This document shows positions 14,315 to 57,320 of a stretch of 64,000 bases of DNA, piece after piece (the stretch's first letter is position 1; the number at the start of each line of letters is the position of its first letter). A program made the translations under genes and the position numbers. The notes under the pieces are model-generated. The model made no database searches. It was given only the letters and a program-made list of their open reading frames with translations, and was not told the origin of the DNA. The stretch lies in IMG/VR virus record IMGVR_UViG_3300020380_000001, positions 124,001-188,000 of that record; one strand, given 5' to 3'.

Positions 14315-14650
14315 ATGAGCCAAGACACACAACACACTCTTATCAGTACTGCTGAAGAAATTAAATCGAACCAAGAAGCTGCTGCATTTGCGAGCAAGCT
14401 TTACAGCGACAACGATGACTCTATTGTTGATATTGACTTAACTTTCGATACTCAACGAGTTCTTATCGCGACAAAGCTGAGCGAGTTAATTAGCGAGACG
14501 TCACGACGACATTTCGCAACACAGTTACAAAGACATGGTGATGTGTGTCTTGCAGCCGGTGAAGCGATTCTAAACGAAGCTATTATCGACACACTCCAAA
14601 CCGCGGTTGACAGCGGTATGTTTGAAACAGACGAAGGCAGCGAAGAATGA
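14315..14650 (+). CDS. hypothetical protein
   Basis: 111-aa acidic ORF in operon. Confidence 0.75.
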   Translation: MSQDTQHTLISTAEEIKSNQEAAAFASKLYSDNDDSIVDIDLTFDTQRVLIATKLSELISETSRRHFATQLQRHGDVCLAAGEAILNEAIIDTLQTAVDSGMFETDEGSEE

Positions 14651-15615
14651 GAAAGAACGTACTTGTACTGGGCTTAGGCATAGGTTCAGTTTATGTTGAC
14701 GAATTGTCTAAGACCCATGATGTGGACACTCTTGACAATAATCCAGAGTTAGACACGACATATAATGAGTTGTCCGATCTTGAGGTCATTGATCGCAAGA
14801 AGATGTACGACATTGCTATTGTGTGTTTGCCTAATTTCCTGCACGAACCGGCAATCGAAGCGCTGCGGGATTTAGCTGATATTATCCTTGTAGAAAAGCC
14901 GGGTTTACCGTCTCTTCCTGAATGGCAACGTATGCGTACTGAATGTGAAGTTGAAGGCACACGACTAGTGATGGCCAAGAACAACATGTACAGAAAAGGT
15001 TTAGGTGAGTTCTTTGACTTGGTTGATGTAATGATCGACAACGGCAGTGTCAAAAAGGTCTGTATTAGTTGGGTCAATAACGCACGCATTCCTAATCCCG
15101 GATCATGGTTCACTAATAAAGACAAAGCATGGGGCGGTGTTGGCCGCGATCTTATGCCGCACTTGTTAAACGAACTATACATGACAATGTACACTGATCC
15201 TGCGGATGAGCCATGCGACTGGATCAAGTCCGTAAAACTCACACAACGTTACGATATAGACAGTGCATCAAAGTTATGCAGTGATCCAGAATACGCGAAT
15301 GGTGATGCCACAGGCGTTTATAACGTAGACGATCGCGCTGTGATAGTTGCAGAAGACGACGGCGTGGAATACCACCTCACGGCTGACTGGGCACACGACT
15401 ATGGTGTCGAAGATGTGGGTATCTCGGTTGAGCTTACAGAAGGCTACATGTTGTATCGTTTAGGCCTATGTCCTAACGAGTGCTACGGTGATATGGTAAA
15501 CACGATGCTCGCGTTTATTGACGACCAAACATTCTGGGAAGAACAAGCCGAGATTGACGATTTCACGCTAGGTGCAATCGACTATTTGTATGAAAATGGA
15601 GACAAAAATGTCTGA
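14647..15615 (+). CDS. Gfo/Idh/MocA family NAD(P)-dependent oxidoreductase
   Basis: VLVLGLGIG Rossmann, ILVEKPG, GGVGRDLMPH. Confidence 0.88.
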   Translation: MRKNVLVLGLGIGSVYVDELSKTHDVDTLDNNPELDTTYNELSDLEVIDRKKMYDIAIVCLPNFLHEPAIEALRDLADIILVEKPGLPSLPEWQRMRTECEVEGTRLVMAKNNMYRKGLGEFFDLVDVMIDNGSVKKVCISWVNNARIPNPGSWFTNKDKAWGGVGRDLMPHLLNELYMTMYTDPADEPCDWIKSVKLTQRYDIDSASKLCSDPEYANGDATGVYNVDDRAVIVAEDDGVEYHLTADWAHDYGVEDVGISVELTEGYMLYRLGLCPNECYGDMVNTMLAFIDDQTFWEEQAEIDDFTLGAIDYLYENGDKNV

Positions 15616-16570
15616 GAAGATTAGATACCTACACGCCTACGGTGACAGAAAGATCGTGTTTAGTGAAATAGACAAGCCTTCTTGTCCTGATAACGGTGTA
15701 TTAGTAAAAACCATTATGACTGGCGTGTGTCGTTCAGACGTAGCGCAGTACCTTGGTGATGAAAAGGGTGTGCCGTTCGGTATGTTTGGGCACGAAGGTC
15801 TCGGCGAAGTAGTTGAGATCGGTAAAGATTGTCATAAACCAGGACTAAAAATTGGTTCTATAGTTAGCACATGGAGCGACCCTGCGTATGCTGACTACTA
15901 TCCAGCCAAGATGAATGAGTTTGTTATCGTTCCTGAAGCCGCGCCTAAGTATATCTTACAGCCGGTGGCGTGCGCGATTAACATTCTTATGCAGACTATT
16001 AAATTCATGGAGCGCATGGATTTAGTGGGTGAAGAAATCCTGCTTCTTGGCACCGGCTTTATGAGTACTATTATCGGTGACGCTGCTAAAGCACGCGGGA
16101 TTGACATGACTATTGTTGGTCGCGCTAATACTGAGAAGTGGGATTCGCTTGGTTTTAAACGTTATGACACCAGTGCTGAATTGTGCGACGAAATAAAAAA
16201 TAAAACGCGTAAAAATTTTAGTGTAGTCATAGACTTATCGTCAAAAGAAGAAAACTTCTACGCCATTTCTGAAACCCTTGCCGGTGACGAAGCGTTAATA
16301 TGTTATGCAGGCACTCCTATGAGTGATGTGAAAACAAACTTCTTTGCCAACTGCTGGAAATGTCATACGTTGATTATGCCTAGCCCCAGAAACCGTGACT
16401 TTAATGATAGTATGGCAGAGTCTGCAAAACTTATTGAAGCCGGTGTTCTTGACACAGACAAGCTTTGGACTTGCGGTTATACACGTGATGTTGAAGCTGA
16501 TGTGATTCAAGCATTTGAAGACGGTTCTGACAGAACACCTGATTATATCCGGGGCTATATTAGCTGGTAA
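15608..16570 (+). CDS. zinc-binding (MDR) dehydrogenase
   Basis: GVCRSD and GHE catalytic Zn ligands, LLGTGFMS Rossmann; structural-Zn Cys lobe absent. Confidence 0.88.
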   Translation: MSEKIRYLHAYGDRKIVFSEIDKPSCPDNGVLVKTIMTGVCRSDVAQYLGDEKGVPFGMFGHEGLGEVVEIGKDCHKPGLKIGSIVSTWSDPAYADYYPAKMNEFVIVPEAAPKYILQPVACAINILMQTIKFMERMDLVGEEILLLGTGFMSTIIGDAAKARGIDMTIVGRANTEKWDSLGFKRYDTSAELCDEIKNKTRKNFSVVIDLSSKEENFYAISETLAGDEALICYAGTPMSDVKTNFFANCWKCHTLIMPSPRNRDFNDSMAESAKLIEAGVLDTDKLWTCGYTRDVEADVIQAFEDGSDRTPDYIRGYISW

Positions 16571-16578: not shown

Positions 16579-19512
16579 ATGTATATTGACGCAATAAAAG
16601 ACGCTAAGAATAATAAAATACACACGGTCAACAGAGTTAACGGCGAGCGAATCTATAAGTCGTACCCAATTGACTGGTCTTTTTATTACGACGATTCAAC
16701 CGGTGAACACATGAGCTGGTATAATACACCAGTTAAGAAAGTGGAGCCGTCAAGCGCTGCTGACCATAAAAAGTTGGTAGGGTCTTTTGGCAACCGCAGA
16801 CTTTATGAGTCTGACGTTAACCACGTGTTTAGATGCTTAGAGCAACATTACCCTGATACAAGTCAGAGTCCCAACTTGCATGTTGCTTTTTTCGATATCG
16901 AGACTGACTTTGACGAAGAAATGGGATATTCGTCACCGACAGAAGCATTTAACCCTATTACGTCAATTGCTGTATACTTGCAATGGTGTAATACTATGGT
17001 GTGTTTGGCTGTGCCGCCTCCTACATTATCGCGGGAAGAAGCAAAAGCCATCGCCGCGCAGGTCCCTGATGTTATACTGTGCGCCACTGAAAAAGAAATG
17101 CTACAAGATTTCCTGAGCATTATTGAAGATGCTGACGTGTTGTCTGGCTGGAACAGCGCAATGTACGATATTCCGTACACTATTCACCGCTTGCAGAAAA
17201 CTATAGGCGGCGAAGCTGCACGACAAATGTGCCTTTGGGGACATATGCCACAGCGCAAGAAAGTGAATCACTTCGGTAAAGAAGAGGTGACATATTCACT
17301 TATAGGCCGTCAGCATTTGGATTATCTTGATCTGTACAAGAAGTACACGTATGAAGAGAAACAAAGTTACAAGCTGAACTCAATTGCAGAAGCCGAGCTT
17401 GGCGAGCAGAAAGTTGAGTACCAAGGTACACTTGATGACCTGTATAAGAAAGACTTTAAAAAGTTTTTAGAGTACAACATTCAAGATACCAAGCTACTTG
17501 ACAGCCTAGACGAAAAGCTAAAGTATATTGACTTAGTTAACACCATTGCACACAACAACCAGGTGCCAATCCAAACAGCGCTAGGCACCGTGTCCATGAT
17601 GGAACAGGTCATCACAGTTGAGGCGCACAACAACGGGTTTATAGTTCCAGACAAACGTAAAGATATTACGGATGATGGACAAGCCGCTGGTGGTTGGGTT
17701 AGTAAGCCTAAGAAGGGATTACATCGCTGGGTAGGCAGCTCGGATTTGAACTCACTTTATCCGTCAGTTATCCGTGCATTTAACATGAGTCCTGAAACGA
17801 TTGTTGGGCAGGTAGATATGTCTTACACTCGTAGTTGTGTTGAAGAATACATCGCTAAAGGATCCAAGTATACGTTCTCTGGCTGGTGGAATGATCGTTT
17901 CAATATTCTTGAAATGGAAGCGTTTTACGATGGCAGCAAGACTACACCTGTTAAACTGCACATTGAAGACAACGGCAAGAAGGGTCCTATCCTTGATATA
18001 ACAGGGCGTGAATTACGCGATGTTATATTCAGTGAAGACCACGACTGGTGTATAAGTGCTAACGGGACTATTTTTGATAATAGTCGTCAAGGCACTGTGC
18101 CTAGCTTGCTTTCAAGATGGTATAACGAACGTAAACAATTACAGAAAGTAATGAAGCGTCTTAAGTTCCTTGCCGCAGCCAACTACGAAGTGCCCAGCGA
18201 TCTAGTTGCGCAATTTGCAGTTGATGAAGAAAAAGAACTTACTAAGAGTGACGTTTACGACTTTCCGCTTGATGCGTTTGACGAGATGGTCAACAACAAA
18301 GACGTTGAGGCACTCAAAAGCTTTATGGACACCTGGGGCTTGACTGTGCATAACGGGCACTTTGCGCCTTGTCCTGCTTGGAAGACTGCGTACACGTATG
18401 CATGTGACTATTGGGATAAACAACAATTAGTTCGTAAGATTAACCTGAACTCGTGTTACGGTGGACTACTGAACGCCCACATGAAGTTCTACGATCAACG
18501 AATTGGTCAGAGTACTACACTAAGCGGGCGCTCAATCACGCGTCACATGACTGCTAAGACTGCCGAGTTGCTAGAAGGCAAATACGACATAGAAGACGTG
18601 AAGTCTATTATCTACAACGATACTGACTCTGTGTATTTCTCAGTATGGCCTGTAATCAAAGACAAGGTAGAAGCGGGCGAAATGGAATGGAACAAAGACA
18701 TAGCTGTGAAGCTGTATGACGATGTATCCGATCAGGTAAGTGACACTTTCCCTGAGTTCCTTAAAACGAAGTTCAATGTGCCTGAGCACCGTGGATCTAT
18801 TATCGCAAGTGGGCGTGAAATTGTTGCTGAGTCTGGATTGTATATTACCAAGAAACGTTATGCTGCACTTGTGTATGACGATGAAGGTGTAAGACGTGAC
18901 ACAGACGGCAAGCCCGGTAAGCTAAAAGCCATGGGTCTTGACTTGAGACGAAGCGACACCCCTGTTTATATCCAGGAATTTTTAAAAGAGATTCTGTTGG
19001 ATACGCTACAAAACAAAGGTGAAAGCTATGTTGTTGACAAGATACTTGACTTTAAGAAAAACGTACAAGGCAAGCTTAAGCCATGGCAACGCGGTGTACC
19101 GAAAGCCGTAAACGGCATGTACAAGTACACCAAAAAGAAAGAACAGCACATCGAGAATCTGATGCGCGGTGTGAAGTCATCCTTGGCTATCCCGGGACAC
19201 GTACAAGCCAGTTTTAACTGGAACGAGTTACTCGAATCCAATGGCGATATGGAGTCTACTAAGATAACAGACGGCACGAAAGTTATTGTGTGTTACTTAA
19301 AGACTAACGAGCGCAACTATACGTCGGTTGCGTACCCGGTGGACCAGTCACGTTTACCTACTTGGTTTACTGATTTGCCATTTGACGTTGATGACATGGA
19401 AGAGCGTGTTCTTGACAAGAAAGTAAGTAACTTACTTTCAGTGCTTAAATGGGACTTAAGCATGGCTAGTAAACAAGGCGAGGTATTTGGTAACTTGTTT
19501 ACTTTTAATTAA
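16579..19512 (+). CDS. gp43: family B DNA polymerase (gp43-like)
   Basis: Exo I FFDIETD, Exo II WNSAMYD, Exo III YNIQD, Pol A DLNSLYPS, B KINLNSCYG, C YNDTDS. Confidence 0.97.
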   Translation: MYIDAIKDAKNNKIHTVNRVNGERIYKSYPIDWSFYYDDSTGEHMSWYNTPVKKVEPSSAADHKKLVGSFGNRRLYESDVNHVFRCLEQHYPDTSQSPNLHVAFFDIETDFDEEMGYSSPTEAFNPITSIAVYLQWCNTMVCLAVPPPTLSREEAKAIAAQVPDVILCATEKEMLQDFLSIIEDADVLSGWNSAMYDIPYTIHRLQKTIGGEAARQMCLWGHMPQRKKVNHFGKEEVTYSLIGRQHLDYLDLYKKYTYEEKQSYKLNSIAEAELGEQKVEYQGTLDDLYKKDFKKFLEYNIQDTKLLDSLDEKLKYIDLVNTIAHNNQVPIQTALGTVSMMEQVITVEAHNNGFIVPDKRKDITDDGQAAGGWVSKPKKGLHRWVGSSDLNSLYPSVIRAFNMSPETIVGQVDMSYTRSCVEEYIAKGSKYTFSGWWNDRFNILEMEAFYDGSKTTPVKLHIEDNGKKGPILDITGRELRDVIFSEDHDWCISANGTIFDNSRQGTVPSLLSRWYNERKQLQKVMKRLKFLAAANYEVPSDLVAQFAVDEEKELTKSDVYDFPLDAFDEMVNNKDVEALKSFMDTWGLTVHNGHFAPCPAWKTAYTYACDYWDKQQLVRKINLNSCYGGLLNAHMKFYDQRIGQSTTLSGRSITRHMTAKTAELLEGKYDIEDVKSIIYNDTDSVYFSVWPVIKDKVEAGEMEWNKDIAVKLYDDVSDQVSDTFPEFLKTKFNVPEHRGSIIASGREIVAESGLYITKKRYAALVYDDEGVRRDTDGKPGKLKAMGLDLRRSDTPVYIQEFLKEILLDTLQNKGESYVVDKILDFKKNVQGKLKPWQRGVPKAVNGMYKYTKKKEQHIENLMRGVKSSLAIPGHVQASFNWNELLESNGDMESTKITDGTKVIVCYLKTNERNYTSVAYPVDQSRLPTWFTDLPFDVDDMEERVLDKKVSNLLSVLKWDLSMASKQGEVFGNLFTFN

Positions 19513-19522
19513 AACGAAATCC

Positions 19523-19554
19523 GACTTGACAAAAACTGTCAAGTCGCGTATAAT
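19523..19554 (+). promoter_or_regulatory. consensus sigma70 promoter overlapped by a 9-bp inverted repeat
   Basis: TTGACA(19526)-17 nt-TATAAT(19549); GACTTGACA-5 nt-TGTCAAGTC at 19523-19545. Confidence 0.75.
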
Positions 19555-19597
19555 ACATCAGATAATAATAATAAGAAGCCTAGGAGCTCACACACAT

Positions 19598-20368
19598 ATG
19601 TCTAAAGTAACCTACGAAGGTCTAAACGATCTTCTTCAATTCACTCACCGTCTTGGTTTCATCCCTGCTGTTAAGCTAACAGGTACAGCGGAAGAGACTC
19701 AGGCAGCGTCTATCCTAGAAGACAAGTCTGTTGTCTTTTTTGGCAAACTGCGCACACCAATCAGCGAACTACAGGGGCAAGTAGTAGGCCTTTCTCGTAT
19801 GAACGTACTTGACGGCTTTATGCGTTATCCTGACTTTACGCCGACTAAAAACGGTACTATCTCGTTCAAGAAAGAAAACCACCCATCCCACGGTGATGTT
19901 GTTAGTGAAGTGCACTTTGAAAGTAAAGCTGGCACGACTGGTAGCTACCGTTTCGTAGGCCGCACTACAATCGAAGAACAGATTCGCGTACCGGAGTTCC
20001 GTGGCGTTAACTGGGACATTACCTACGTACCTACCAAAGAAGACTACGAAGACTTAAAATACCTAGCCGGTATCTTCGCAGCGCAAGAAGCTGTATTCAT
20101 TCCTGAAATTGCAGGCGATGAACTTGTATTCAGCATCGGTACCCAAGCTAGTGACCGCACACAGATTCACTTAAACACTGGTGAACTTACTGTGGAAAAC
20201 ACGTTGAAAGGTAATTTGAGCTGGCCGCTAGATAAGGTACTAACTATTCTAGCTAAAGGCATGGACGCAGAGTGTAAGATGTTTATTTCTTCAGCCGGCG
20301 CGCTTAAGATTGAGATCGACACTGGTGTTGGCCTTTACGAGTACATCCTGACAGCGAAGCCTGTTTAA
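19598..20368 (+). CDS. probable DNA polymerase sliding clamp (gp45/PCNA-like)
   Basis: 256 aa from ATG 19598 (SD AGGAG), directly after polB, alternating alpha/beta pattern and PCNA-like C-terminus (FISSAGALKIEIDTGVGLYEYILTA). Confidence 0.6.
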   Translation: MSKVTYEGLNDLLQFTHRLGFIPAVKLTGTAEETQAASILEDKSVVFFGKLRTPISELQGQVVGLSRMNVLDGFMRYPDFTPTKNGTISFKKENHPSHGDVVSEVHFESKAGTTGSYRFVGRTTIEEQIRVPEFRGVNWDITYVPTKEDYEDLKYLAGIFAAQEAVFIPEIAGDELVFSIGTQASDRTQIHLNTGELTVENTLKGNLSWPLDKVLTILAKGMDAECKMFISSAGALKIEIDTGVGLYEYILTAKPV

Positions 20369-20397
20369 TACAACAATAACAAACACACGAGGCTCGA

Positions 20398-22137
20398 ATG
20401 AGTAGAGAAAATCACGATTTGAGTGCCGAGTTTGATGAGCAGAATTACGCGGTCTACTTGCCCGCGTTATCTGGCTTTTATACTCAGTCACTTGCTAAGG
20501 TTAAAGACAAACCTGAAACCATGCGTAAAGACGGTCCGCCTAAGGGATTCGAATACGGCTTTGAAGGCTTAGACTTCTTGAGAAAAGAAGACAATTACTT
20601 TAGGTACCGTTATGCGCTATACTCTGCAGGTCACGCGCAACTGGACTTAGAAAAAGCTAACGCTGACTCACCTATGGTGCACGAACGTCCAGACGATACT
20701 ATTATTGTTGGCGACTCGGGCGGGTTCCAGCTTGCAACTGGTGTAATTAAAATGAACTGGGAAAATGCAAAGTCTGCAAATGACCCAGAGCGCGAAAAGT
20801 TGTGTGAGAAAATCCTGCGTTGGCTAGAGCATACTGCTGACTGGTCAATGACACTGGATGTGCCAGCCCTAGCGGCAGCGCCACCACTAAACAAAAAGAC
20901 TGGTTTAACAAGTTTCCAAGATACATTAGATATTACTCTTCTGAATCTTGATTACTTTATGAAGAACCGTGTGCCTGGTGCGACTAAGTTCTTGAACGTG
21001 CTTTCTGGCTCCACACAAACCGATCTTAAGCGTTGGTATGACGCGGTAATAAAGTACTCAGATCCCGAGCAGGTAAAGGCTATGGGCTATACAGAAGACC
21101 GTACGCTGGAAGGCTTTGCTTACGCCGGTATTAACGCACTTAATATTGGATCTGCGCTTGAGACAACGTGTCGACTAATAGACGACGGCATGCTTAAAGA
21201 GTGTGAGTGGATTCACATACTAGGCATCGGGCGTACTGACTACGCGTGTTATATCAACTCACTGCAACGTGAACTGAATAAACACCACGCGCCTAAACTT
21301 AAGATTAGTTACGATGCGGCAAGTCCGTTTGTATCTACTGCATATGGCCAGTTTTACGGTGACGGCACGTACACCAAACACCGCATTGGTTACAACATGG
21401 GCAAGGCGCCAGACGACAAGCGCTTAGCGTTCTGTGAAGATCGCATGCCGTGGAACAACCCTATTATGAACCGCTGTCGTATTAATGACATTTGTGTTCG
21501 TAAGCCTGCGTATGCTGAGGTCAACGGTGAACTACTATTCCCGCGCCAAAGCAAGTTTAAAGACAAGAAGAAAGCTGAAGCTGAAAACGAAGTGTTCCTT
21601 GCTGAGTTTGAAGATCAGATTAATGACTTGCGCGAAGCAGGGGTAGAAGCAACGTTTTATCCGCCAGAGCTTAATCGCCAGGATAAAGAAACACGTACTT
21701 CTTGGGATATTGGTTCTTACATGATTATGATGGGTCACAACGTGTGGACACACATTGACTCAGTAACACAAGCGATCCGCTTAGGTAAGCTTGAAGCACA
21801 TAATTATCGTGATGTGTCGTGGCGCGACTGGATGCCAGGCAAGGGCAAGAGTTCAACTAACGCTTTTGCCGAATACGTGCCTGGATCAGTTATCTACTTT
21901 GATAGCTTATGTCGTGACTTGTTTGACCCAGCGCGTACTAGTGAAGAACGTATGCAAATTCTTAAAGAAGCGCAACCGTTCCTGAACACCATTAACGCAC
22001 GTAACTTGGGATCAGGCAACGTGTTCGATAGCTTATTCGATATAGGCGACGAAGGCGCTACTGACCCTGAAAGCTCTTACGCTAGTCTGGATGACGAAAA
22101 GATGGTAAATCTGGAACAGAATCAAGACGATTTGTAA
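20398..22137 (+). CDS. tRNA-guanine transglycosylase-fold protein (DpdA/TGT-like 7-deazaguanine insertase)
   Basis: GDSGGFQ (catalytic Asp), MTLDVP, HILGIG, SYDAASP motifs of TGT; adjacent to queE. Confidence 0.8.
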   Translation: MSRENHDLSAEFDEQNYAVYLPALSGFYTQSLAKVKDKPETMRKDGPPKGFEYGFEGLDFLRKEDNYFRYRYALYSAGHAQLDLEKANADSPMVHERPDDTIIVGDSGGFQLATGVIKMNWENAKSANDPEREKLCEKILRWLEHTADWSMTLDVPALAAAPPLNKKTGLTSFQDTLDITLLNLDYFMKNRVPGATKFLNVLSGSTQTDLKRWYDAVIKYSDPEQVKAMGYTEDRTLEGFAYAGINALNIGSALETTCRLIDDGMLKECEWIHILGIGRTDYACYINSLQRELNKHHAPKLKISYDAASPFVSTAYGQFYGDGTYTKHRIGYNMGKAPDDKRLAFCEDRMPWNNPIMNRCRINDICVRKPAYAEVNGELLFPRQSKFKDKKKAEAENEVFLAEFEDQINDLREAGVEATFYPPELNRQDKETRTSWDIGSYMIMMGHNVWTHIDSVTQAIRLGKLEAHNYRDVSWRDWMPGKGKSSTNAFAEYVPGSVIYFDSLCRDLFDPARTSEERMQILKEAQPFLNTINARNLGSGNVFDSLFDIGDEGATDPESSYASLDDEKMVNLEQNQDDL

Positions 22138-22152: not shown

Positions 22153-22180
22153 AAAAAGCGCCAAACAGGCGCTTTTTTTG
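22153..22180 (+). terminator. Rho-independent terminator
   Basis: AAAAAAGCGCC-aaaca-GGCGCTTTTTT. Confidence 0.8.
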
Positions 22181-22246: not shown

Positions 22247-23152
22247 ATGTCTAAAGAATATAGATATACTGAGATTTTTAGAAGTTTGCAGGGTGAAGGC
22301 ATGTACACCGGCGTTAACACCGCTTGGCTACGTTTCTTTATGTGTAACTTGGAGTGCCGTGGTTTTGGACAACCAGAGCCAGCTAATCCAGAGTCTTACT
22401 ACCCTGTGGGCCAGACTATTGATATTACTGATATCACTAGCTTAGATGATGTGCCGGTACACGAGTACGGCTGTGATAGTGCGTACTCTGTTGCCAAACA
22501 GTACAGAAACCTTGCTATGAAAGGTACTGCTGCTGAAATTGCAGACAAAATAACTGCGATGCTGGCTAACGACTTTAATCCGGATGGGTTGTTTTTAAAT
22601 CCGCATACAGGATTAGATACGCATATGGCATTCACTGGTGGTGAGCCCATGATGCAACAACCAGCTATGATTGACATTATGGAAGAGTTTAATCACAGAA
22701 GCAACCCTATCCGTTACATGACTATTGAGACAAATGGCACACGTAACTTAGATGGGAAGTTTGGGTCTTATATTGCGGAGCAACTTCTCTGTTCAGAATT
22801 ACAAGAAGTGTTCTGGTCAATTAGTCCTAAACTAAAGCACGTATCGGGCGAGGATCCTAAGAAAGCGATCAAGCCAGCAGTGTTGGCAGCTTACGCAGAT
22901 ACGTACGATCACGGACAGTTAAAGTTCGTGTTAAACAACGATCCCACAGCATGGCGTGAACTGCATTTGGCAATTAAAAAGTTCCGTGATGTTGGTGTTG
23001 ATTGGCCAGTATACATTATGCCGGTTGGTGGTCTTAAAGAAGACCAAGAATGTGACGCAACACGTAGAGTAGTTGAACGCGCATTATATGAAGGGTTCCA
23101 TGTAAGTGGGCGCTTGCACGCGCACATCTTTGGTAACGAACACAACACGTAA
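22247..23152 (+). CDS. queE: 7-carboxy-7-deazaguanine synthase (radical SAM)
   Basis: EIFRSLQGEG, LRFFMCNLEC...GCDS, FTGGEP, TIETNG, SISPKL, RLHAHIFG. Confidence 0.9.
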   Translation: MSKEYRYTEIFRSLQGEGMYTGVNTAWLRFFMCNLECRGFGQPEPANPESYYPVGQTIDITDITSLDDVPVHEYGCDSAYSVAKQYRNLAMKGTAAEIADKITAMLANDFNPDGLFLNPHTGLDTHMAFTGGEPMMQQPAMIDIMEEFNHRSNPIRYMTIETNGTRNLDGKFGSYIAEQLLCSELQEVFWSISPKLKHVSGEDPKKAIKPAVLAAYADTYDHGQLKFVLNNDPTAWRELHLAIKKFRDVGVDWPVYIMPVGGLKEDQECDATRRVVERALYEGFHVSGRLHAHIFGNEHNT

Positions 23153-48955: not shown

Positions 48956-49032
48956 TGGAGCACACTGCGGGATTCGAACCCGCGTAATCTGGATTTGCAA
49001 TCCAGTGCCTATATCCACTCGGCCAAGCGTGC
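48956..49032 (-). tRNA. tRNA-Cys(GCA)
   Basis: Full cloverleaf, CTGGA-TTGCAAA-TCCAG, U73, encoded CCA. Confidence 0.95.
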
Positions 49033-49039
49033 TTTATAT

Positions 49040-49279
49040 TTAAGAACAAGAAGTTGCAACAAGCGCAACGGCGTCAACTAGTGCAAGAATTTCATTTTCA
49101 GTTTTGTTTTCTAAACTCTCAAAACATATGTCCATTGACGTACAATCAACGAACTGGAGTTCGAACGAGTCAGTCATTGTCGGAATTACGCCGACGTGAA
49201 ACATAATCGGTGCCTTGTCGCGAATACGTGCAGACAATTCGTTAAAGAATTCTTTTGAAATAATCTTCTTGTTTGTCAT
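49040..49279 (-). CDS. hypothetical protein
   Basis: 79 aa. Confidence 0.65.
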   Translation of the reverse strand: MTNKKIISKEFFNELSARIRDKAPIMFHVGVIPTMTDSFELQFVDCTSMDICFESLENKTENEILALVDAVALVATSCS

Positions 49280-49287
49280 CTTTTTTC

Positions 49288-49866
49288 CTAGTATGTACTT
49301 ACGTCTTGTGCGAACTCGTCGCCAAATCCAACCAATAACTCAGTCATGTTTTGGCAATCAAGGTAGTTGGCAGCGTGCACATCTGCAAAAACAGCAACGT
49401 CACCGCGCTCGCGGGGCTCTAGCATTTCTGTCGATCTAGCTAAAGTTTCGACGTCCATTTCATAATGTGATTTGATGTACGCACCGTTTACAATGCTACC
49501 CAGACGCTGTCCATCTGCGTTGCCGCCATATACCATGAATTCTTCCACGATATAGTTACCAATTGGCATTGAGAATGATTCACTGTCAATCACTGCGATA
49601 CGGTATTCACCGATTTCGCACACTAACACACCTTCAAGCCCAGTAGCACCTTCGTGCTTTACTAGATCAGGCGTTTTAAGCATAGATATAACTTCGTCTA
49701 TGTGTTCTTGACCTTTGCATAGTGCAAGGCTTGTGCCGTCAGAGCCGCTAATATCGAGTTCAATACAAGCCGGTGGTGTTACGCTTGATTGGCAGTAAAA
49801 TGTACCTTCGAGGTTAAGTTTACTGCCCGGGTAGTGGATTTCTACCTTGTGCGGTACGAGTTCCAT
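49288..49866 (-). CDS. hypothetical protein
   Basis: 192 aa, SD GGAG. Confidence 0.75.
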   Translation of the reverse strand: MELVPHKVEIHYPGSKLNLEGTFYCQSSVTPPACIELDISGSDGTSLALCKGQEHIDEVISMLKTPDLVKHEGATGLEGVLVCEIGEYRIAVIDSESFSMPIGNYIVEEFMVYGGNADGQRLGSIVNGAYIKSHYEMDVETLARSTEMLEPRERGDVAVFADVHAANYLDCQNMTELLVGFGDEFAQDVSTY

Positions 49867-49956
49867 GATCGTTCTCCGTTACGTAAAGTCCAATTACTCT
49901 ACTTCGTGCATTATAACACCGGATCCAAATCAGTCAACTGTTTTGTGAAAAATGAT

Positions 49957-50100
49957 TTATTTCTTTTTCTTCTTGTCTTTTTTGGCTGGTGTTGCTTTTT
50001 CTTCAACTTTTACTTTAGGTACGCTAACTGCTTGAGGTTCAATGTTATTTGCAAACACTGATTCTATTAGTTCAACAAACCATATTCCGTTTTTTCCCAT
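49957..50100 (-). CDS. small Lys-rich peptide (47 aa)
   Basis: SD GGAGG; MGKNGIWFVEL...KKDKKKKK. Confidence 0.55.
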   Translation of the reverse strand: MGKNGIWFVELIESVFANNIEPQAVSVPKVKVEEKATPAKKDKKKKK

Positions 50101-50238
50101 ATATCCTCCGTTATTATGATGATGGTGACCCTAGTGAAAATTAAACAAGCTTGATGGCGAGGTTAGATTCAGAAGGAGACGGTCTTATAAGTATATACTA
50201 GAAAATTTCATTAATTACCGGCATGCGGTGTAAAGAAG

Positions 50239-50359
50239 TGGTAGGGAGTGCAGGACTCGAACCTGCGACCAACGGCTTATCAGGCAAAAAGGATATGCTG
50301 TTAGAATACTAATACAGTATTCATTTTTACGTTGCTCTACCCAACTGAGCTAACTCCCT
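50239..50359 (-). tRNA. tRNA-Ile(GAT) interrupted by a 44-nt insert (50286-50329) between positions 29 and 30
   Basis: Removing the insert gives a perfect 77-nt cloverleaf: AGGGAGT/ACTCCCT, GCTC/GAGC, ACGGC-CTGATAA-GCCGT, GCAGG-TTCGAGT-CCTGC, ACCA. Confidence 0.85.
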
Positions 50360-50570
50360 AGAAGTTTCTAATGAACTGTCTTAAGTCTTTGACACCTCCA
50401 CATCCGAGTATTATTAACCCACCTAGTGGCAACATGCTAAAAATACCTGCGAGTGCGTTAAACGCGAAGCAGTATATGATGGCCATTACTAAACCAATAT
50501 TAAGGGTTAGTATACCAGCCATCAAAAGCATTGCACAAAAACGGGCTAATGTTTTAAATGTTGTTTCCAT
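50358..50570 (-). CDS. membrane protein
   Basis: 70 aa, two TM segments. Confidence 0.7.
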   Translation of the reverse strand: METTFKTLARFCAMLLMAGILTLNIGLVMAIIYCFAFNALAGIFSMLPLGGLIILGCGGVKDLRQFIRNF

Positions 50571-50591
50571 TTTCTTAGTATGAACCCAAGT

Positions 50592-50867
50592 TTACTTTTT
50601 GTCAAGGAATTTTTTAAAATCGCTGTAAATTTCTATACCGGCTTCATCAACTTCTGATTGTGTCAAAAACGCCGAGTCCGAGTACAATGTGCCGTCGCGT
50701 TTAATGAAGTAAAACCGATCATCGACTTTGCCCAACACAGCACCCCGTTCCAAAAGTCCAGGCACCATATCAATCAAAGAGTCTGCGCCAAACACGGTGC
50801 CCTTAAACAATTCAGCATCAGGCACTACACCAATCAAAACGCTGGTAACATCATCTATTGTTGCCAT
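50592..50867 (-). CDS. hypothetical protein
   Basis: 91 aa, SD GAGG. Confidence 0.7.
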   Translation of the reverse strand: MATIDDVTSVLIGVVPDAELFKGTVFGADSLIDMVPGLLERGAVLGKVDDRFYFIKRDGTLYSDSAFLTQSEVDEAGIEIYSDFKKFLDKK

Positions 50868-50868
50868 G

Positions 50869-51216
50869 TTAACCTCGCTTACATTTAACGGGTAGCGTTA
50901 AATAATTCCCTGTATCGAACTCTGCGATGCGCATGAGGAACTTGCGCTCCGCGATGATGCCGCGCTTTTTGCCTTTGACGGAAAGTTGGCAGCGATAGTG
51001 ACCATCCCAGAGTTTGCGTTGGAGTTTCTTTAGTTCGCCGGACTTGATTGAGTACACTTCTTCGCGCTCAATAGAAACATAGTAACCTGGCGCTTTTGCT
51101 ATTGGGTATAGTAGATCTGATTTGTCTAATTCGACGGCATCACGGGGCGGGGATAAATGTTGCTCGTTAAGCCGGTCTAGCGCCGCTAGTACAGCTTCTT
51201 TAATTCTTTTAATCAT
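50869..51216 (-). CDS. NUMOD4-like (homing-endonuclease-associated) basic protein
   Basis: YPIAKAPGYYVS...VYSIKSG..LKK...GHYRCQL pattern; no HNH motif seen. Confidence 0.45.
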   Translation of the reverse strand: MIKRIKEAVLAALDRLNEQHLSPPRDAVELDKSDLLYPIAKAPGYYVSIEREEVYSIKSGELKKLQRKLWDGHYRCQLSVKGKKRGIIAERKFLMRIAEFDTGNYLTLPVKCKRG

Positions 51217-51235
51217 AGTAACCTCAAGTTAAGGT

Positions 51236-51340
51236 TGCCGGGCCAAGGAATCAAACCTCGTTCGGGTGCGTACTTGCGAAGTTTGCTGCGACAAATCTAA
51301 TACAGACTTGATGGAGTTCCCTCAGAATCATTCACCCGGC
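51236..51340 (-). ncRNA. tRNA-like gene carrying a variant of the 27-nt core
   Basis: GCCGGGT/GCCCGGC acceptor, CGAGG-TTTGATT-CCTTG T arm; CAAGTC-TGTATTA-GATTTG-TCGCAGCA at 51284-51310. Confidence 0.6.
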
Positions 51341-51384
51341 ATAATAGGTACGTAAAAGTTAGCACCTATTTGATTAAAAGTCTA

Positions 51385-51855
51385 CTAGTTTCCTGGATGT
51401 CTACGATGCCATTCACGCTCTTGTTCAGCTTCAGCGTCATCTTGCCATTGCTGTTTTTCGTCACTAGTTGCTTCAAACTCAATCTCGGAGCCGTTCACAT
51501 CATATGTAACTTTGTCGAAATACTTCTCGTTTGCGTCGAAGAATTCCTGAACGTGATCCGGGCTTGCCGCGTGCTTTGCCTCGCTAGCAAGTCGTTGGAT
51601 TTCTTTGTCAGTGATGTAGTCGTTTGGTCCAAACGAATCAGAGTTGGCGATTTCACGATCCATATAAATCTCAACTGGATCCTTGGTGCCTGCCATCTTA
51701 TTGAGATAACGCAGAATGGCTACTAGTAGTTCAGCCACTGCCATGTTTTGACACAGGTAAAATTGATCGTCTACGCTGTGGTCAATAACTAGAGCAAGGT
51801 CTACGTTTAAAGAGCTCTCCATGAGCTTTGCTGATTTGGTGATTTTATCAAACAT
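51385..51855 (-). CDS. acidic late protein (candidate internal head protein)
   Basis: TAAATA at 51892; leader MFDKITKSAKLMES. Confidence 0.7.
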   Translation of the reverse strand: MFDKITKSAKLMESSLNVDLALVIDHSVDDQFYLCQNMAVAELLVAILRYLNKMAGTKDPVEIYMDREIANSDSFGPNDYITDKEIQRLASEAKHAASPDHVQEFFDANEKYFDKVTYDVNGSEIEFEATSDEKQQWQDDAEAEQEREWHRRHPGN

Positions 51856-51930
51856 TATGAATTACGCCTTGTCGTTGTGTTTTAACGTGTGTATTTAGCA
51901 CTCATTAAAACACAACGTCAAGATCTTTAA

Positions 51931-52875
51931 TCATCGTTTCGATTTCTTTTTAGGTTTTGGTTTATATGTAGGCTTTGGTTTCGGCTTATACTTTGGTTTC
52001 GGCGCGTAAGTCGATTTCGGCTTTGGTGTAAAAGAACTTGTGCTGGCCTTAGGAACCGGCTTACGGGTAGTTATTGTCTGATTAGCTTTAGGCGTCTGGG
52101 TAGTGGTAGACGATGCTGCCTTGGCATTAGCGTTAGCCGCAGCGCGGTTTTTCTTACAGGTCGTAGTCGTGCAGTTATTCCACGCGCTGTCTTTGTTGCC
52201 CGTCTTCTTGCTACCCCATCCACCTTGCGCTACTGAGCTCGATTGTGTTTTGGGCTTCGTGTCGGTTGTCTTTGGCTTTGATTTGATCTTAGACGACACT
52301 GTCTGTTTAGTTTCGGTATACTTGCGCTTGCGCACATTATACATGGCATCGCTTGACGACTTACGTCTACGATAGTCAGCCTCTGAGATTGACTTACCGT
52401 CCGACGACGTGTAGTTATTAACAGTGACGTTTGTAGTGCGCCATCCGCCTGGGTTAGAACTTTCCCAGCTGTTACGGGTTAATGCATATGCCGCTGATGC
52501 TGCTAGTACGCCGGTTGCTATTTGATACGACACGTAGTTTCTAGACTGCTGGGCATAGATGCTATTAGGGTCATGCCATTCCCAGTTACCAAACGCGTTC
52601 CAGTGGCCGTACTGCAAATTACCGCGGTAATCAACATAAGCGCCCGGCGCTACGGGGCGGTTGTAATACGCCATTCTTTCTTCATGTCTGGATTTGTTTA
52701 GTTGCTCATAGTAGCCTGACTCAATTCTTGCCAGCTCTAATTCATGCTGACGAGCGCGGCGTAACTCTTTTTCTTCAGCTGTTTCGCAACCACTTAAGCT
52801 GCTACCAACCAATACAATACACAGTGCCACTACCACGGTGGTTATTGTATTCCTTACCGATTTACTGATTTTCAT
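51931..52875 (-). CDS. lipoprotein with Lys/Ser/Thr/Pro-rich disordered tail
   Basis: Signal peptide with LSGC lipobox; KPK repeats at C-terminus. Confidence 0.8.
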   Translation of the reverse strand: MKISKSVRNTITTVVVALCIVLVGSSLSGCETAEEKELRRARQHELELARIESGYYEQLNKSRHEERMAYYNRPVAPGAYVDYRGNLQYGHWNAFGNWEWHDPNSIYAQQSRNYVSYQIATGVLAASAAYALTRNSWESSNPGGWRTTNVTVNNYTSSDGKSISEADYRRRKSSSDAMYNVRKRKYTETKQTVSSKIKSKPKTTDTKPKTQSSSVAQGGWGSKKTGNKDSAWNNCTTTTCKKNRAAANANAKAASSTTTQTPKANQTITTRKPVPKASTSSFTPKPKSTYAPKPKYKPKPKPTYKPKPKKKSKR

Positions 52876-52894
52876 GCTCTTTCCTTATGTGGTG

Positions 52895-52912
52895 AATGGG
52901 GCCGAAGCCCCA
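52895..52912 (-). terminator. GC hairpin (probable terminator)
   Basis: GGGGC-TTCG-GCCCC between SPFH gene and lipoprotein. Confidence 0.45.
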
Positions 52913-52927
52913 AACGGTTTGATTACA

Positions 52928-54913
52928 TTACTCGCCTTTCTTATCCGTAGATAGGAACTGTGCAATGTTGTTGGTCGTGCCAAGTAATGTGGCTGCCGCT
53001 GTGGTACTTTCGCCACCGTCGCCGCCTACAAATACAGTAGCAGTTTTAACCATTTCTGGGTTCTTAACAGCACCGTCTACAGCCATTTTAAATAACACCT
53101 GCTCTTGTACTTTCTCTTCACCCATTACAGCTACTAGCTCGCGCTGACCTTTCGCAGCTTCAATATCACGGTCACGCATACCCTCACCCTCTTTCTTAAG
53201 TTCATAAGCGCGGGCATCAGCTAGCTTTTCACGTTCGGACTTGATCTTGTCAGCCGCTTGGTCACGTAGTTCAGCAGTAACAACAATCTTCTGATTTTCT
53301 GCTTCTACACGGGCTGCCTCTGAGTCTTTACGTTGCTCGTAGGTAGCTTGCTCTTCCTTAAACGTGTTTTGTAACTGTCGAGCATAGTTAGCACGCATAC
53401 GCGGGATAAGAGACTCAACTGGTAAGTTAGGATGACCCATAGTCTGGATGTTAATTCCCAGACCGTAGTCAGAAACAAACTCGTTAAGTGCTGTAATGCT
53501 TTCCGATTCAATCTCTGCGCGGTTGTTGATCAAGTCAAATAAACGTCGACTTTCGTCAACACATTCTTGATCCTTATACGTGCCCGCAGCGTACTTGAGC
53601 TTTTTGCCTTCGTACACATCGTTTTCGTACACAGCACAGCGCATGATATCCTGGCCTTGTGCTGCAATACGGAACGTACTTTCAATTGGGTTTTTAAGGA
53701 ACTGCTCCACAGCGTGTAAGCCTGTGTTTCTGTCTTGCACGAAGTCACCGATTGTTGCAACTACCAGAGGCGCGTCAACAACTTGGTATTTCGTTTTCAA
53801 ATCAATAGGCACTGTCCAGCCTTCTACCACTACATCAATGGCTTCGCCTTCCGCGTTAGCTGGTTTAGTGATAGTGTCAGATCCAATGATGTTTTTGATC
53901 TTACCGTCATCTTCCATTTCAAACGATACGGTTTTCTTAACGTATCCGCCGAAACGGTCAAAGTCTTGCTGGCGAGTAGGTACGTGGGTAATCGTATACA
54001 CTTTAGGGTGGAAACGATACGTTTTAGGCTCAAGGTGTTCGTTCCATACGCCAGCACAGCCCTTAGGCACTAAGTAAGTAACCGCACCATTAAACGAACG
54101 TACTTCTCTACGATTATCATTACAAAATTCACTAGGCAAGTCGTCTGTAGCTGAACGCACAACGCCTACTTCACCAGTTCTAATGTCTTCCGCAGGGTAG
54201 TTTTTAAAGCTGTATAGGATTTTGTTTGCCATGATCACACCGCCTGTTACTAGCGTTGACTGATCACCGCGGTAACCAAGCTTGTTGCCGTTGCTGTCAG
54301 TTTTAGATAGGAATGTCGCAGCATCAAGGAATTCGTTTTGGTCCTGCCATTTTGGCGCAAGGATCATGTCGTCTGACATTGGACGGCCATCACGTGTATT
54401 CACGATAGCGAAGTGGTTCGCAGGAATGCTGTGAGGCTTAGTCAAGTCAATTTCAGTACCGTTGATCTCAATCTCGTCTAGCTCTGTATACAAGACATCA
54501 ATTAACGGGAACCATTTAAAACCAGGTGTGAATACTGTCGCTTGTGGGCCTTTCATGCCACCGAACGGGTTCGCTGTCATTGGCTTAGTTGCAACATAGT
54601 GTCCAACTGGGAGTGGTTCACCACCGTATACACGAGAGAAGTGTTTGATTTCACCGTCACTAACGTATACTGAGTTGAGGTCAACCATCAACACAATTAC
54701 CAACACCGTCGCGATTACTGCCGGAAACTTGGAAACGACACGAACAATGCTCTTAGCTACTTTTGCATGGGGCGATTCGTTTCGTCTACCGTACTGATCT
54801 TGTTGCGATGAATGTTGCTCTGATTGTTTTTGAAGTTTTTCTCGCTTCTTGCGCGTCAGTGCGAAATACACGAGATAGATTATTCCTACGAGTAGGAGTA
54901 GTAACTTGAACAT
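52928..54913 (-). CDS. SPFH/band-7 (flotillin-like) membrane protein
   Basis: N-terminal TM segments, repeated beta region (GEVGVVRS, GVWNEHLEPKTYRFHP), SPFH-like core and C-terminal coiled coil. Confidence 0.75.
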   Translation of the reverse strand: MFKLLLLLVGIIYLVYFALTRKKREKLQKQSEQHSSQQDQYGRRNESPHAKVAKSIVRVVSKFPAVIATVLVIVLMVDLNSVYVSDGEIKHFSRVYGGEPLPVGHYVATKPMTANPFGGMKGPQATVFTPGFKWFPLIDVLYTELDEIEINGTEIDLTKPHSIPANHFAIVNTRDGRPMSDDMILAPKWQDQNEFLDAATFLSKTDSNGNKLGYRGDQSTLVTGGVIMANKILYSFKNYPAEDIRTGEVGVVRSATDDLPSEFCNDNRREVRSFNGAVTYLVPKGCAGVWNEHLEPKTYRFHPKVYTITHVPTRQQDFDRFGGYVKKTVSFEMEDDGKIKNIIGSDTITKPANAEGEAIDVVVEGWTVPIDLKTKYQVVDAPLVVATIGDFVQDRNTGLHAVEQFLKNPIESTFRIAAQGQDIMRCAVYENDVYEGKKLKYAAGTYKDQECVDESRRLFDLINNRAEIESESITALNEFVSDYGLGINIQTMGHPNLPVESLIPRMRANYARQLQNTFKEEQATYEQRKDSEAARVEAENQKIVVTAELRDQAADKIKSEREKLADARAYELKKEGEGMRDRDIEAAKGQRELVAVMGEEKVQEQVLFKMAVDGAVKNPEMVKTATVFVGGDGGESTTAAATLLGTTNNIAQFLSTDKKGE

Positions 54914-55003
54914 ATATGCTCCTTGTGTGTGTATGAGTATGTTCGGTTAGGTTTTACATTATAGTCATTTAGGCATTCTGTCTAGATAACTATGAATTTT
55001 TTA

Positions 55004-55270
55004 TTAATACGAACGTCGCTGGCCGGCTCTTATTTGTGAATATCCTGACTTGGACTTTACTTCGCCAATAGCATCAACACAATGGTTTATTGACTTGTCA
55101 AGGCTGCGGCCTAGTTCATCCAACTCTTCGTAGTCGCCGAGTTTGGGCTCGTGTATCTTGTTAAATCTTTCTTTAATGCGTGTGAGGTCTCTGTGGATAG
55201 ACTCCAGTACGCCCAAGTCGCCTGGAGATTCTAAAAGTAGTGCTATTTGTTTGAAATCTTGATTTTTCAT
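55004..55270 (-). CDS. late protein (candidate internal head protein)
   Basis: TAAATA at 55293; leader MKNQDFKQIALLLES. Confidence 0.7.
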   Translation of the reverse strand: MKNQDFKQIALLLESPGDLGVLESIHRDLTRIKERFNKIHEPKLGDYEELDELGRSLDKSINHCVDAIGEVKSKSGYSQIRAGQRRSY

Positions 55271-55328
55271 TTGTTATCCTCAATTGGCACAGTATTTAAT
55301 TAACTGCGCACGGATAACACCATATCAA

Positions 55329-55613
55329 TTACCAATCAATATGTAAGTCAAGCATTTCGCTGTATACGAAACCGTCTTCTTCGTCATACGAATCGTTAAG
55401 CTCAGAAGTATACAAATTAATTTCTTCTTCTTCGAAGCCAGCACGCTTCATGACATCAGCAATTGCGTCAATCGCTTCTTGCTTATTTTTGCACTCAACA
55501 AAGCCGTCTTCAACTGATAAAATCATTTCAAGATCATAGCTACCATCGTTTGGCAGGTCTAAAATAATAGCGTCAGTGGCGTCAATAATTTTAAACGTAT
55601 TCGGTTGTGCCAT
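55329..55613 (-). CDS. acidic hypothetical protein
   Basis: 94 aa; early promoter upstream. Confidence 0.75.
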   Translation of the reverse strand: MAQPNTFKIIDATDAIILDLPNDGSYDLEMILSVEDGFVECKNKQEAIDAIADVMKRAGFEEEEINLYTSELNDSYDEEDGFVYSEMLDLHIDW

Positions 55614-55646
55614 AATTTCTTGCCTTGTTTTGTTAAGTTCGTATAC

Positions 55647-57298: not shown

Positions 57299-57320
57299 AA
57301 ATCCCTTCTTGTTATAATAG

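Follow-up and report, generated by a model that had tools for sequence, protein, structure and literature searches.

The stretch of DNA analysed here (the window) covers 64,000 nucleotides of a complete 306.5-kb jumbo phage genome (positions 124,001 to 188,000 of the IMG/VR record IMGVR_UViG_3300020380_000001), and contains a replication module in which the genes for a DNA polymerase, a sliding clamp, a very divergent TGT/DpdA-like protein and a QueE-like enzyme follow each other in this order on the same strand. The features that can be distinguished in this region are the following:

16579..19512, plus strand, family-B (T4-like) DNA polymerase of 977 aa.
19483..19509, plus strand, C-terminal clamp-docking peptide of the polymerase (VFGNLFTFN), assigned by analogy with the C-termini of T4 gp43 and RB69 that bind gp45 (PMC6212786).
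19526..19554, plus strand, perfect sigma-70 consensus promoter-like site (TTGACA, 17 nt, TATAAT; 12 of 12 matches) upstream of the clamp gene, with an inferred function; AGGAG at 19583-19587 precedes the ATG at 19598.
19598..20368, plus strand, sliding clamp of PCNA/gp45 type, 256 aa.
20398..22137, plus strand, divergent TGT/DpdA-like transglycosylase of 579 aa (P0003).
22021..22038, plus strand, predicted clamp-docking motif VFDSLF in the disordered linker of the TGT-like protein.
22078..22116, plus strand, second conserved tail element (YASLDDEKMVNLE; consensus [FY]A[DS]x[ND]DEK[LM]xxLE), with an unknown partner, seen in many but not all homologs.
22158..22179, plus strand, intrinsic-terminator-like hairpin (GCGCC, AAACA, GGCGC, then seven T) directly after the stop codon of the TGT-like gene.
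22247..23152, plus strand, QueE-like radical-SAM enzyme (7-carboxy-7-deazaguanine synthase type) of 301 aa.

The polymerase was recognized by Pfam DNA_pol_B and DNA_pol_B_exo1 and by phrog_262 at E 1e-194. The clamp, which matches phrog_12062 and whose homologs are annotated PCNA or clamp in phages PAC2 and Phosso, gave an AF2 model with a pLDDT of 93 that aligns over its full length with PCNA (3p91, VIA Z 18.5) and T4 gp45 (6drt, VIA Z 15.9). The QueE-like enzyme matches phrog_2076 at E 1e-43, whereas its N-terminal matches to the QueE NCBIfam models lie below their cut-offs, and homologs occur in nt-1, KVP40-like phages, PA5oct and CP220. The promoter-like site and the terminator-like hairpin together bracket the clamp and TGT-like genes, which are inferred to form a single unit. 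The order polymerase, clamp, TGT-like is kept in 76 of 80 related viral contigs.

In contrast to its neighbours, the 579-aa protein gave no sequence hit in Pfam, PHROG, NCBIfam, PADLOC or PDB. However, its AF2 model (pLDDT 89.5) displays a TGT fold, since the top 50 Foldseek hits in the PDB are all TGT, ArcTGT or DpdA, with a VIA Z of 17-18 over about 300 aligned residues. The nearest viral models include the 'tRNA guanine transglycosylase' of the Achromobacter phage Motura (E 2e-11) and the DpdA2 of nt-1 (E 2e-8). All three TGT active-site Asp positions (D106, D154 and D306), together with the DSGGFQ, LGxG and SxDAASPF blocks, are invariant in 30 diverse homologs, and DSGGFQ is equally invariant in bacterial TGTs. 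An hhalign comparison of the family with a bacterial TGT profile aligns the blocks FLNVLSGS, EGYAFAG, HxLGxG and SFD306AASPF with LFGIIQGS, DGYAVGG, YLMGVG and FD264CVMP (E 4e-4), D306 being thus aligned with the nucleophile Asp, although the homology at the profile level remains weak, with hhalign probabilities of 36% to TGT and 65% to DpdA3. The preliminary description, which had found no evident CxCxxC zinc site and large insertions in the protein, was correct in both respects: only D364-x-C366, H447 and H452 are conserved in place of the zinc site, and a large variable insertion, lacking in most homologs, occurs at about residues 367-435. Taking into account the loss of the zinc site, the insertions, the additional acidic tail element and the absence of recognition by any sequence library, a catalytically altered TGT-fold protein using the clamp for another purpose, e.g., as a DNA glycosylase-like repair factor or as a regulator competing with the polymerase for the clamp, might be considered. 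This seems quite unlikely in view of the invariant active-site residues and of the co-occurrence of the family with QueE, QueC, QueF and FolE.

The preliminary description had also noticed that the polymerase and the TGT-like protein share a short hydrophobic peptide, and this observation is confirmed. Translation of 19474-19512 gives QGEVFGNLFTFN followed by the stop codon, which places VFGNLF at 19483-19500, and translation of 22009-22137 gives GSGNVFDSLFDIGDEG followed by an acidic tail, which places VFDSLF at 22021-22038, corresponding to residues 542-547 of 579. Residues 536-556 of the model exhibit a pLDDT below 50, and the motif accordingly lies in a disordered linker between the globular domain and the acidic tail. 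Within this single genome the match is not beyond chance, since a loose phi-x-x-[LFIM]-F pattern in the last 14 residues occurs in 11 of 389 ORFs, against 11.9 expected from shuffles. The significance comes from the comparison with other genomes: 80 of 83 distinct homolog tails keep an [LIFM]F core (shuffled mean 29.6, maximum 44), and 49 of 83 keep the stricter phi-x-x-[LIFM]-F form (shuffled mean 6.6, maximum 13).

In addition, the polymerases of 78 related loci carry a phi-x-x-[LF]-F motif at the same position as the one found here, and the flavour of the enzyme motif (LF, FF, or D-L/I-F) matches that of the polymerase in 60 of 61 genomes, with a single discordant genome (L059) in the LF versus FF comparison. 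Examples of pairs from the same genome, polymerase first, are EVMDNFFEF with EEVMDTFFEF (both ending at the stop codon), TFHSLFDFDD (at the stop codon) with TTFGSLFETEE, FIDDLFS (at the stop codon) with KSKDIFDT, and NNTDLFDW with NNNDLFGW (both at the stop codon). The enzyme follows both LF/FF switches of the polymerase on the tree. However, this co-variation rests on very few independent events, namely two LF/FF switches and one D switch, and the independent-pairs sign test cannot reach significance. Phosso keeps a C-terminal GLF although the gene lies 175 kb from the polymerase and clamp genes. As a natural control, five bacterial homologs without polymerase or phage clamp lack the motif, whereas two MAG contigs with polymerase and clamp possess it.

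Modelling of the complex docks the motif in the canonical peptide pocket of the clamp, with ipSAE values of 0.76, 0.76 and 0.78 and a best control of 0.02, a mark reached by 58 of 80 solved complexes and by 2 of 110 mismatched pairs. The runs agree in at least 63% of the contacts. The predicted interface associates residues 539-550 of the enzyme with clamp residues 43, 46, 130-137, 233-235 and 250-255, i.e., the connector loop and the C-terminus; the second tail element lay mostly outside the modelled peptide. The score may partly reflect the memory that the model has of PIP-box and gp45-peptide complexes, the calibration holds only roughly because our own alignments were used, and the fold of the partner itself is uncertain (pLDDT about 50, at least 49). 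It is possible, but rather unlikely, that the enzyme acts on DNA free of the clamp, the shared peptide being a lineage-inherited or coincidental hydrophobic patch, or binding some other replisome protein also contacted by the polymerase tail. In this respect, the motif is short, the co-variation events are few and phylogenetically confounded, known DpdA enzymes work without a clamp in E. coli (PMC6884629), and the DpdA2 of nt-1 shows no such tail. This reading has to be weighed against the near-universal occurrence of the motif in a linker otherwise free to vary, its agreement with the polymerase in both LF/FF switches, its loss in the clamp-less bacterial homologs, the specificity of the predicted interface for the canonical pocket (controls at 0.02 or below), and the established role of family-B polymerase C-termini as clamp binders (PMC6212786).

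With respect to the modified base, QueE is adjacent to the enzyme, FolE and a QueD-like protein are encoded elsewhere in the genome, and the genome encodes neither a QueC nor a canonical TGT. In Vibrio phage 2.275.O, the homolog sits between the polymerase and clamp genes and those for QueF, a YhhQ-like transporter, QueC, GAT and FolE. The closest cultured relative, PA5oct, has restriction-resistant DNA, ascribed by the authors of the study to a modified G, and they list QueE and PTPS but no transglycosylase (PMC12191111). DNA rather than tRNA as the target is supported only indirectly, by the position in the replication module, the adjacent 7-deazaguanine genes and the G-modified DNA of PA5oct. 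A tRNA-guanine transglycosylase that would modify phage or host tRNAs (Asp, Asn, His, Tyr) to tune translation agrees with the fold and the catalytic motifs, and the phage does encode 23 tRNAs, including Asp-GUC, Asn-GUU and His-GUG, with the GUN anticodons of the classical TGT substrates. This alternative nevertheless appears very improbable, since a clamp-docking peptide has no role for a tRNA enzyme, the gene is fixed between the clamp and the replication genes in 76 of 80 loci and sits beside primase and helicase in Phosso, the TGT zinc site is lacking, and all phage 7-deazaguanine systems studied so far modify DNA (PMC10516641).

The preliminary description had proposed that the enzyme is loaded on the clamp for a replication-coupled exchange of DNA bases rather than acting on tRNA, and this interpretation is supported by every part of it that could be tested in silico. 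With moderate confidence, and on computational evidence only, in the absence of any experiment on this phage, the protein is best regarded as a DNA-acting member of the tRNA-guanine transglycosylase (TGT)/DpdA superfamily that would exchange guanine in phage DNA for a 7-deazaguanine made by the FolE, QueD-like and QueE enzymes of the phage, the base being probably 7-carboxy-7-deazaguanine or a derivative, because no QueC is encoded. The peptide of the flexible linker, mimicking the C-terminal peptide of the polymerase, would dock in the hydrophobic pocket under the interdomain connector loop of the clamp, which would carry the enzyme along newly replicated duplex DNA as a 'tool-belt' client and make the modification replication-coupled and efficient. 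Physical binding, the DNA substrate, the inserted base and the coupling to replication remain inferences. According to the published view, the insertion of 7-deazaguanine is post-replicative (PMC10516641), which is compatible with an action behind the fork but does not require a clamp.

Among the known systems, the phage DpdA enzymes (DpdA1 of phage 9g, DpdA2 of Vibrio phage nt-1, DpdA3 of Cellulophaga phiST and Campylobacter CP220, DpdA4 of HVTV-1) similarly consist of a TGT-superfamily barrel with the Asp motifs and are encoded with FolE, QueD and QueE. Like DpdA2 and DpdA3, the present enzyme is invisible to ordinary HMM searches, the phiST gene also lies between the CDG genes and the polymerase (PMC10516641), and the gene set stops at CDG as in DpdA3 phages. 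However, it comprises 579 aa against 259 aa for DpdA3 and 464 aa for DpdA2, the hhalign similarity to DpdA3, over 100 columns, is only weak, an HMM of the family finds nothing in CP220 or nt-1, and it carries a clamp-docking linker and an acidic tail that are lacking in the nt-1 DpdA2 sequence. No paper linking DpdA to a sliding clamp was found in the literature searched. Bacterial and archaeal tRNA-guanine transglycosylases (TGT, PF01702) share the fold, DSGGFQ and the nucleophile Asp in an aligned FD/SxD block, but the present protein gives no Pfam hit even at E 10, lacks the CxCxxC...H zinc site, possesses about 200 extra residues and occurs in the context of a replication module. The tether itself finds a precedent in the T4 DNA ligase bound to the gp45 clamp (PDB code 6DRT), a non-polymerase DNA enzyme carrying a flexible peptide that resembles the C-terminus of the polymerase (EGLDFLFD against ASLDFLFG in gp43), as confirmed by ITC (Kd about 11 uM) and by a crystal structure (PMC6212786), and the same clamp pocket is predicted here. 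In the ligase, the motif belongs to a loop inside the NTase domain, whereas here it occurs in a C-terminal linker, or at the very C-terminus in some lineages, and the client is a base-modifying enzyme instead of a replication or repair enzyme.

The window covers bases 124001-188000 of a complete 306.5-kb jumbo-phage genome with direct terminal repeats, recovered from a metagenome (IMG/VR UViG 3300020277_000001), for which no close cultured relative exists at the DNA level. The genes and sites relevant to the present analysis occur in the following order:

14647-16570, two oxidoreductase-like genes (GFO/IDH/MocA and ADH_N) of unknown role, directly upstream of the polymerase
16579-19512, family-B DNA polymerase of 977 aa (Pfam DNA_pol_B, phrog_262)
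19522-19554, hairpin containing a perfect sigma-70 consensus site (19526-19554)
19598-20368, predicted sliding clamp of PCNA/gp45 type, 256 aa
20398-22137, P0003, the divergent TGT/DpdA-like protein of 579 aa
22078-22116, second conserved tail element of P0003 (residues 561-573)
22158-22179, GC hairpin followed by seven T's
22247-23152, QueE-like radical-SAM gene (phrog_2076)

The polymerase ends in QGEVFGNLFTFN followed by the stop codon, whereas P0003 reads GSGNVFDSLFDIGDEG and then continues into an acidic tail. The positions given for the two peptides in the preliminary description, 19483-19500 for VFGNLF in the polymerase and 22021-22038 for VFDSLF in P0003, are exact. The ORF located between these two genes most likely starts at the ATG at 19598, which is preceded by AGGAG. 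A TTGACA, 17 nt, TATAAT site matching the sigma-70 consensus at 12 of 12 positions lies between the polymerase stop and the clamp start, and the GC hairpin with its seven T's directly follows the P0003 stop, so that clamp and enzyme look like one bicistronic unit, as inferred from consensus matches only. In some relatives (loci L001:2590-7816, L035, L062 and L067) the polymerase gene is split and, in PA5oct, a Hef-like homing endonuclease sits between the two halves.

P0003 gave no hit in Pfam, PHROGs, NCBIfam or PADLOC, nor in PDB sequences searched by phmmer and by profile, and the fold had to be approached by structure prediction. In particular, no match to the Pfam TGT family PF01702 was found for the protein or in the six-frame translated genome at E 10, and the same family also found nothing in PA5oct or in CP220, whose DpdA3 is likewise missed. 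A word-based search nevertheless found more than 3,200 homologs in the protein database, none of them with a Pfam domain. An AlphaFold2 model built on 30 diverse homologs is confident (pLDDT 89.5) except for residues 536-556, where pLDDT falls below 50. All of the top 50 Foldseek matches in the PDB are TGT, archaeosine TGT or DpdA, and VIA-align gives Z 17-18 and an rmsd of about 4.4 A, with about 300 aligned residues spanning model residues 12-500, consistent with a (beta/alpha)8 TGT barrel. Residues invariant among the 30 homologs include G-D106-S-G-G-F-Q, D154, the L-G-x-G strand and S-x-D306-A-A-S-P-F. With hhalign, the LSGS, EGYAFAG, LGxG and D306 blocks align with the QGS, DGYAVGG, MGVG and nucleophile-Asp (E. 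coli D264) blocks of a bacterial TGT profile, with an E value of 4e-4 but a probability of only 36%. The hexapeptide DSGGFQ, which contains the general acid/base Asp (E. coli D89), is identical and also invariant in the bacterial TGT alignment. However, this block lies outside the stretch aligned by hhalign, so the equivalence rests on the motif and on the range of the structural superposition. In contrast, the zinc site CxCxxC...H of TGT is lacking, since no CxCxxC is present and only D364-x-C366, H447 and H452 are conserved in that region, and a variable insertion at about residues 367-435 is missing from most homologs. A non-canonical function of the protein is nevertheless considered very unlikely.

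The 256-aa protein encoded between polymerase and P0003 is predicted to fold with pLDDT 93. Over its full length the modelled monomer matches PCNA (Z 18.5) and T4 gp45 (6drt, Z 15.9), and its homologs are annotated as PCNA or sliding clamp in two phage records.

With respect to the supply of the base, QueE lies adjacent to P0003 and occurs within 10 kb in many of the related loci. A thymidylate synthase, FolE and a long QueD-like protein of 335 aa sit together elsewhere in the genome, at genome positions 88998-91696 (locus L094:4998-7696). The QueD-like protein has no Pfam hit (phrog_14221, "unknown function"), but it carries a CxxxHGH motif (CQNIAHGH) and is 34% identical to the nt-1 PTPS-like protein. 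Neither QueC nor a canonical TGT is encoded, and the phage's own genes therefore stop at 7-carboxy-7-deazaguanine, as in DpdA3 phages (PMC10516641). In Vibrio phage 2.275.O, a cultured relative, the homolog lies between pol-clamp and QueF, a YhhQ-like transporter, QueC, an amidotransferase and FolE (L096:8738-13946), and different members of the family probably insert different 7-deazaguanines, preQ1-type there and CDG-type here. PA5oct-like Pseudomonas jumbo phages possess a 44% identical homolog in the same pol, clamp, X order, with QueE downstream. The DNA of PA5oct is restriction-resistant and G-modified, which supports DNA as the substrate only indirectly, and the authors who ascribe this to a modified G list QueE and a PTPS but no transglycosylase (PMC12191111). 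Iyer et al. 2021 (PMC7824862) mention a "deazaguanine synthesis/incorporation system" in PA5oct, and it is not excluded that the PA5oct homolog (QCG76197) was already listed there as a transglycosylase. Action on tRNA rather than on DNA appears very unlikely, although the phage does possess Asp, Asn and His tRNAs with GUN anticodons. These belong to a cluster of 23 phage tRNAs, seven of which lie in the window (48956-63342, minus strand), and within which ARAGORN also calls a 97-nt tRNA with anticodon UUA (reads UAA, labelled "Stop") at genome positions 189501-189597, about 1.5 kb beyond the window end.

Within this genome alone, the peptide shared by polymerase and enzyme is not more than expected by chance, since a loose C-terminal pattern occurs in 11 ORFs against 11.9 expected from shuffles. 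Two further ORFs ending in a similar motif, at genome positions 195937-196488 and 252437-252808, were considered as possible gp55- or gp33-like clamp clients, but one has no family and the other is a gp31-like head-morphogenesis protein, and neither was retained. Comparison with other genomes changes the picture. In 80 IMG/VR loci the order pol, clamp, TGT-like is essentially fixed. Among 83 distinct tails, 80 carry an [LIFM]F core directly after the last helix of the globular domain (shuffled mean 29.6, maximum 44) and 49 carry the stricter phi-x-x-[LIFM]-F form (shuffled mean 6.6, maximum 13), whereas a few tails have an M-W variant. In addition, the flavour of the motif matches the polymerase C-terminus of the same genome, as illustrated by the following pairs.

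Table. Polymerase C-termini and TGT-like tails of the same genomes; (stop) marks the end of the protein.
Polymerase C-terminus; TGT-like tail; remark
EVMDNFFEF (stop); EEVMDTFFEF (stop); both C-terminal
TFHSLFDFDD (stop); TTFGSLFETEE
FIDDLFS (stop); KSKDIFDT
HLETLFDFS..; TTFESLFG
HFDSLFGW (stop); NSFNSLFDVD; PA5oct
NNTDLFDW (stop); NNNDLFGW (stop); Vibrio phage 2.275.O
TFNDLFTF (stop); KIVEGLF (stop); Phosso, genes 175 kb apart

On a tree built from the globular domain only, the polymerase core changes between LF and FF twice and the enzyme follows both times, while a D at position -2 appears once in both proteins, and 60 of 61 genomes agree. These events are too few for a sign test, which finds only one or two independent pairs, and the co-variation is accordingly reported as qualitative only. 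Predicted pocket residues of the clamp also differ systematically between the motif classes, at residues 132, 235 and 250 (19991-19993, 20300-20302 and 20345-20347), with P, A, I in class LF, I, L, L in class FF, and R, A, then L or I in class D-L/I-F, which is consistent with co-evolution but cannot be separated from phylogeny.

Bacterial chromosomal homologs of the TGT-like core, 27-34% identical and 445-495 aa long, provide a natural control. The five homologs, from Reyranella massiliensis, Azospirillum, Devosia and two MAGs (loci L101:5914-7251, L104:5950-7395, L102, L099 and L103), lack the polymerase, the clamp and the motif, whereas two MAG contigs that do carry pol-clamp have the motif. 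In the Reyranella and Azospirillum loci the homologs lie beside a DEAD helicase and an AAA_21 ATPase, respectively. Devoid of any PADLOC hit and of the phage tail, these proteins may belong to an unrecognised cellular modification or defence system.

To assess whether the motif could dock on the clamp, the clamp and P0003 residues 530-565 were folded together three times, each with its alignment. The ipSAE values reached 0.76, 0.76 and 0.78, whereas the best of three controls gave 0.02. The mark was reached by 58 of 80 solved complexes and 2 of 110 mismatched pairs, counts that hold only roughly because alignments built for this analysis were used. The runs agree in at least 63% of contacts, and the pLDDT of the partner is at least 49. 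The confident contacts involve peptide residues 539-550 (V542, F543, L546, F547), which touch clamp residues 43, 46, 130-137 (the interdomain connector), 233-235 and 250-255 (the C-terminus), corresponding to the canonical PIP/gp45-peptide pocket. Such a result may reflect likeness to solved complexes, and it supports binding but does not show it. The alternative that the enzyme acts on DNA independently of the clamp is regarded as unlikely.

It is proposed that the clamp, once loaded at primer-template junctions, retains the enzyme on freshly replicated duplex through the linker peptide, and that the TGT-type active site (D106 and D306) there exchanges G for the phage-made 7-deazaguanine base. 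The fold, the motifs, the clamp identity, the synteny, the conservation, the co-variation and the modelled interface all rest on computation, while DNA as substrate, the nature of the base, the binding and the coupling to replication are inferred. A second conserved tail element, [FY]A[DS]x[ND]DEK[LM]xxLE, lies after the clamp motif in many homologs, including PA5oct, but is absent from lineages whose protein ends at FFEF, and its partner is unknown. A more far-reaching possibility, which remains tentative, is that the whole family of over 3,200 homologs, scattered through metagenome and viral-contig collections, some of them marine, consists of true clients of the phage sliding clamp that replace G processively on nascent duplex DNA directly behind the polymerase, with the acidic second tail element as a further, unknown replisome contact. 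This would be the first DNA hypermodification enzyme shown to be part of a replisome tool-belt.

Modification of DNA by 7-deazaguanine is a major phage counter-defence, of which DpdA is regarded as the signature enzyme, and insertion is described as post-replicative without a known recruiting mechanism. In this respect, the family supplies a candidate for the transglycosylase that the restriction-resistance study of PA5oct did not name, PA5oct-like phages being candidates for therapy whose G-modified DNA is sensed by END nucleases. Docking on the sliding clamp through a polymerase-like peptide would, if true, explain how a base-exchange enzyme can modify a 300-kb genome efficiently. In addition, the association of a TGT barrel without a Pfam hit, a position after pol-clamp and a phi-x-x-[LF]-F linker would allow thousands of hypothetical proteins from public genome and metagenome collections to be annotated.

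Among predicted viral structures, the nearest to P0003 are the Vibrio phage 2.275.O homolog (E 3e-26), the Achromobacter phage Motura "tRNA guanine transglycosylase" (E 2e-11), nt-1 DpdA2 (YP_008125322, E 2e-8) and, weakly, phiST DpdA3 (CGPG_00065, E 2e-2). The comparison with phiST DpdA3 by hhalign gives a probability of 65% (E 6e-5) over only 100 columns, for proteins of 259 aa against 579 aa. The motif blocks HVDSGGLQ, HMLGFG and ISYDSS are shared with nt-1 DpdA2, although hhalign to this single sequence gives a probability of 1.7%. A profile HMM of the family found nothing in CP220 or nt-1, but HMMs are too insensitive here for these blanks to be evidence against homology. P0003 is therefore a TGT/DpdA-superfamily enzyme, but not a demonstrable member of any named DpdA subfamily. 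In the literature searched, no paper was found that links DpdA or 7-deazaguanine insertion to a sliding clamp, nor one that names DpdA subfamilies beyond DpdA4. P0003 is viewed as a DpdA-like enzyme of an unnamed, very large, phage-borne subfamily, which differs by an added, predicted clamp-docking module. A precedent for such a module exists in T4 DNA ligase, which was found to bind gp45 because a flexible loop resembles the gp43 C-terminus, as confirmed by ITC and a crystal structure (PMC6212786).
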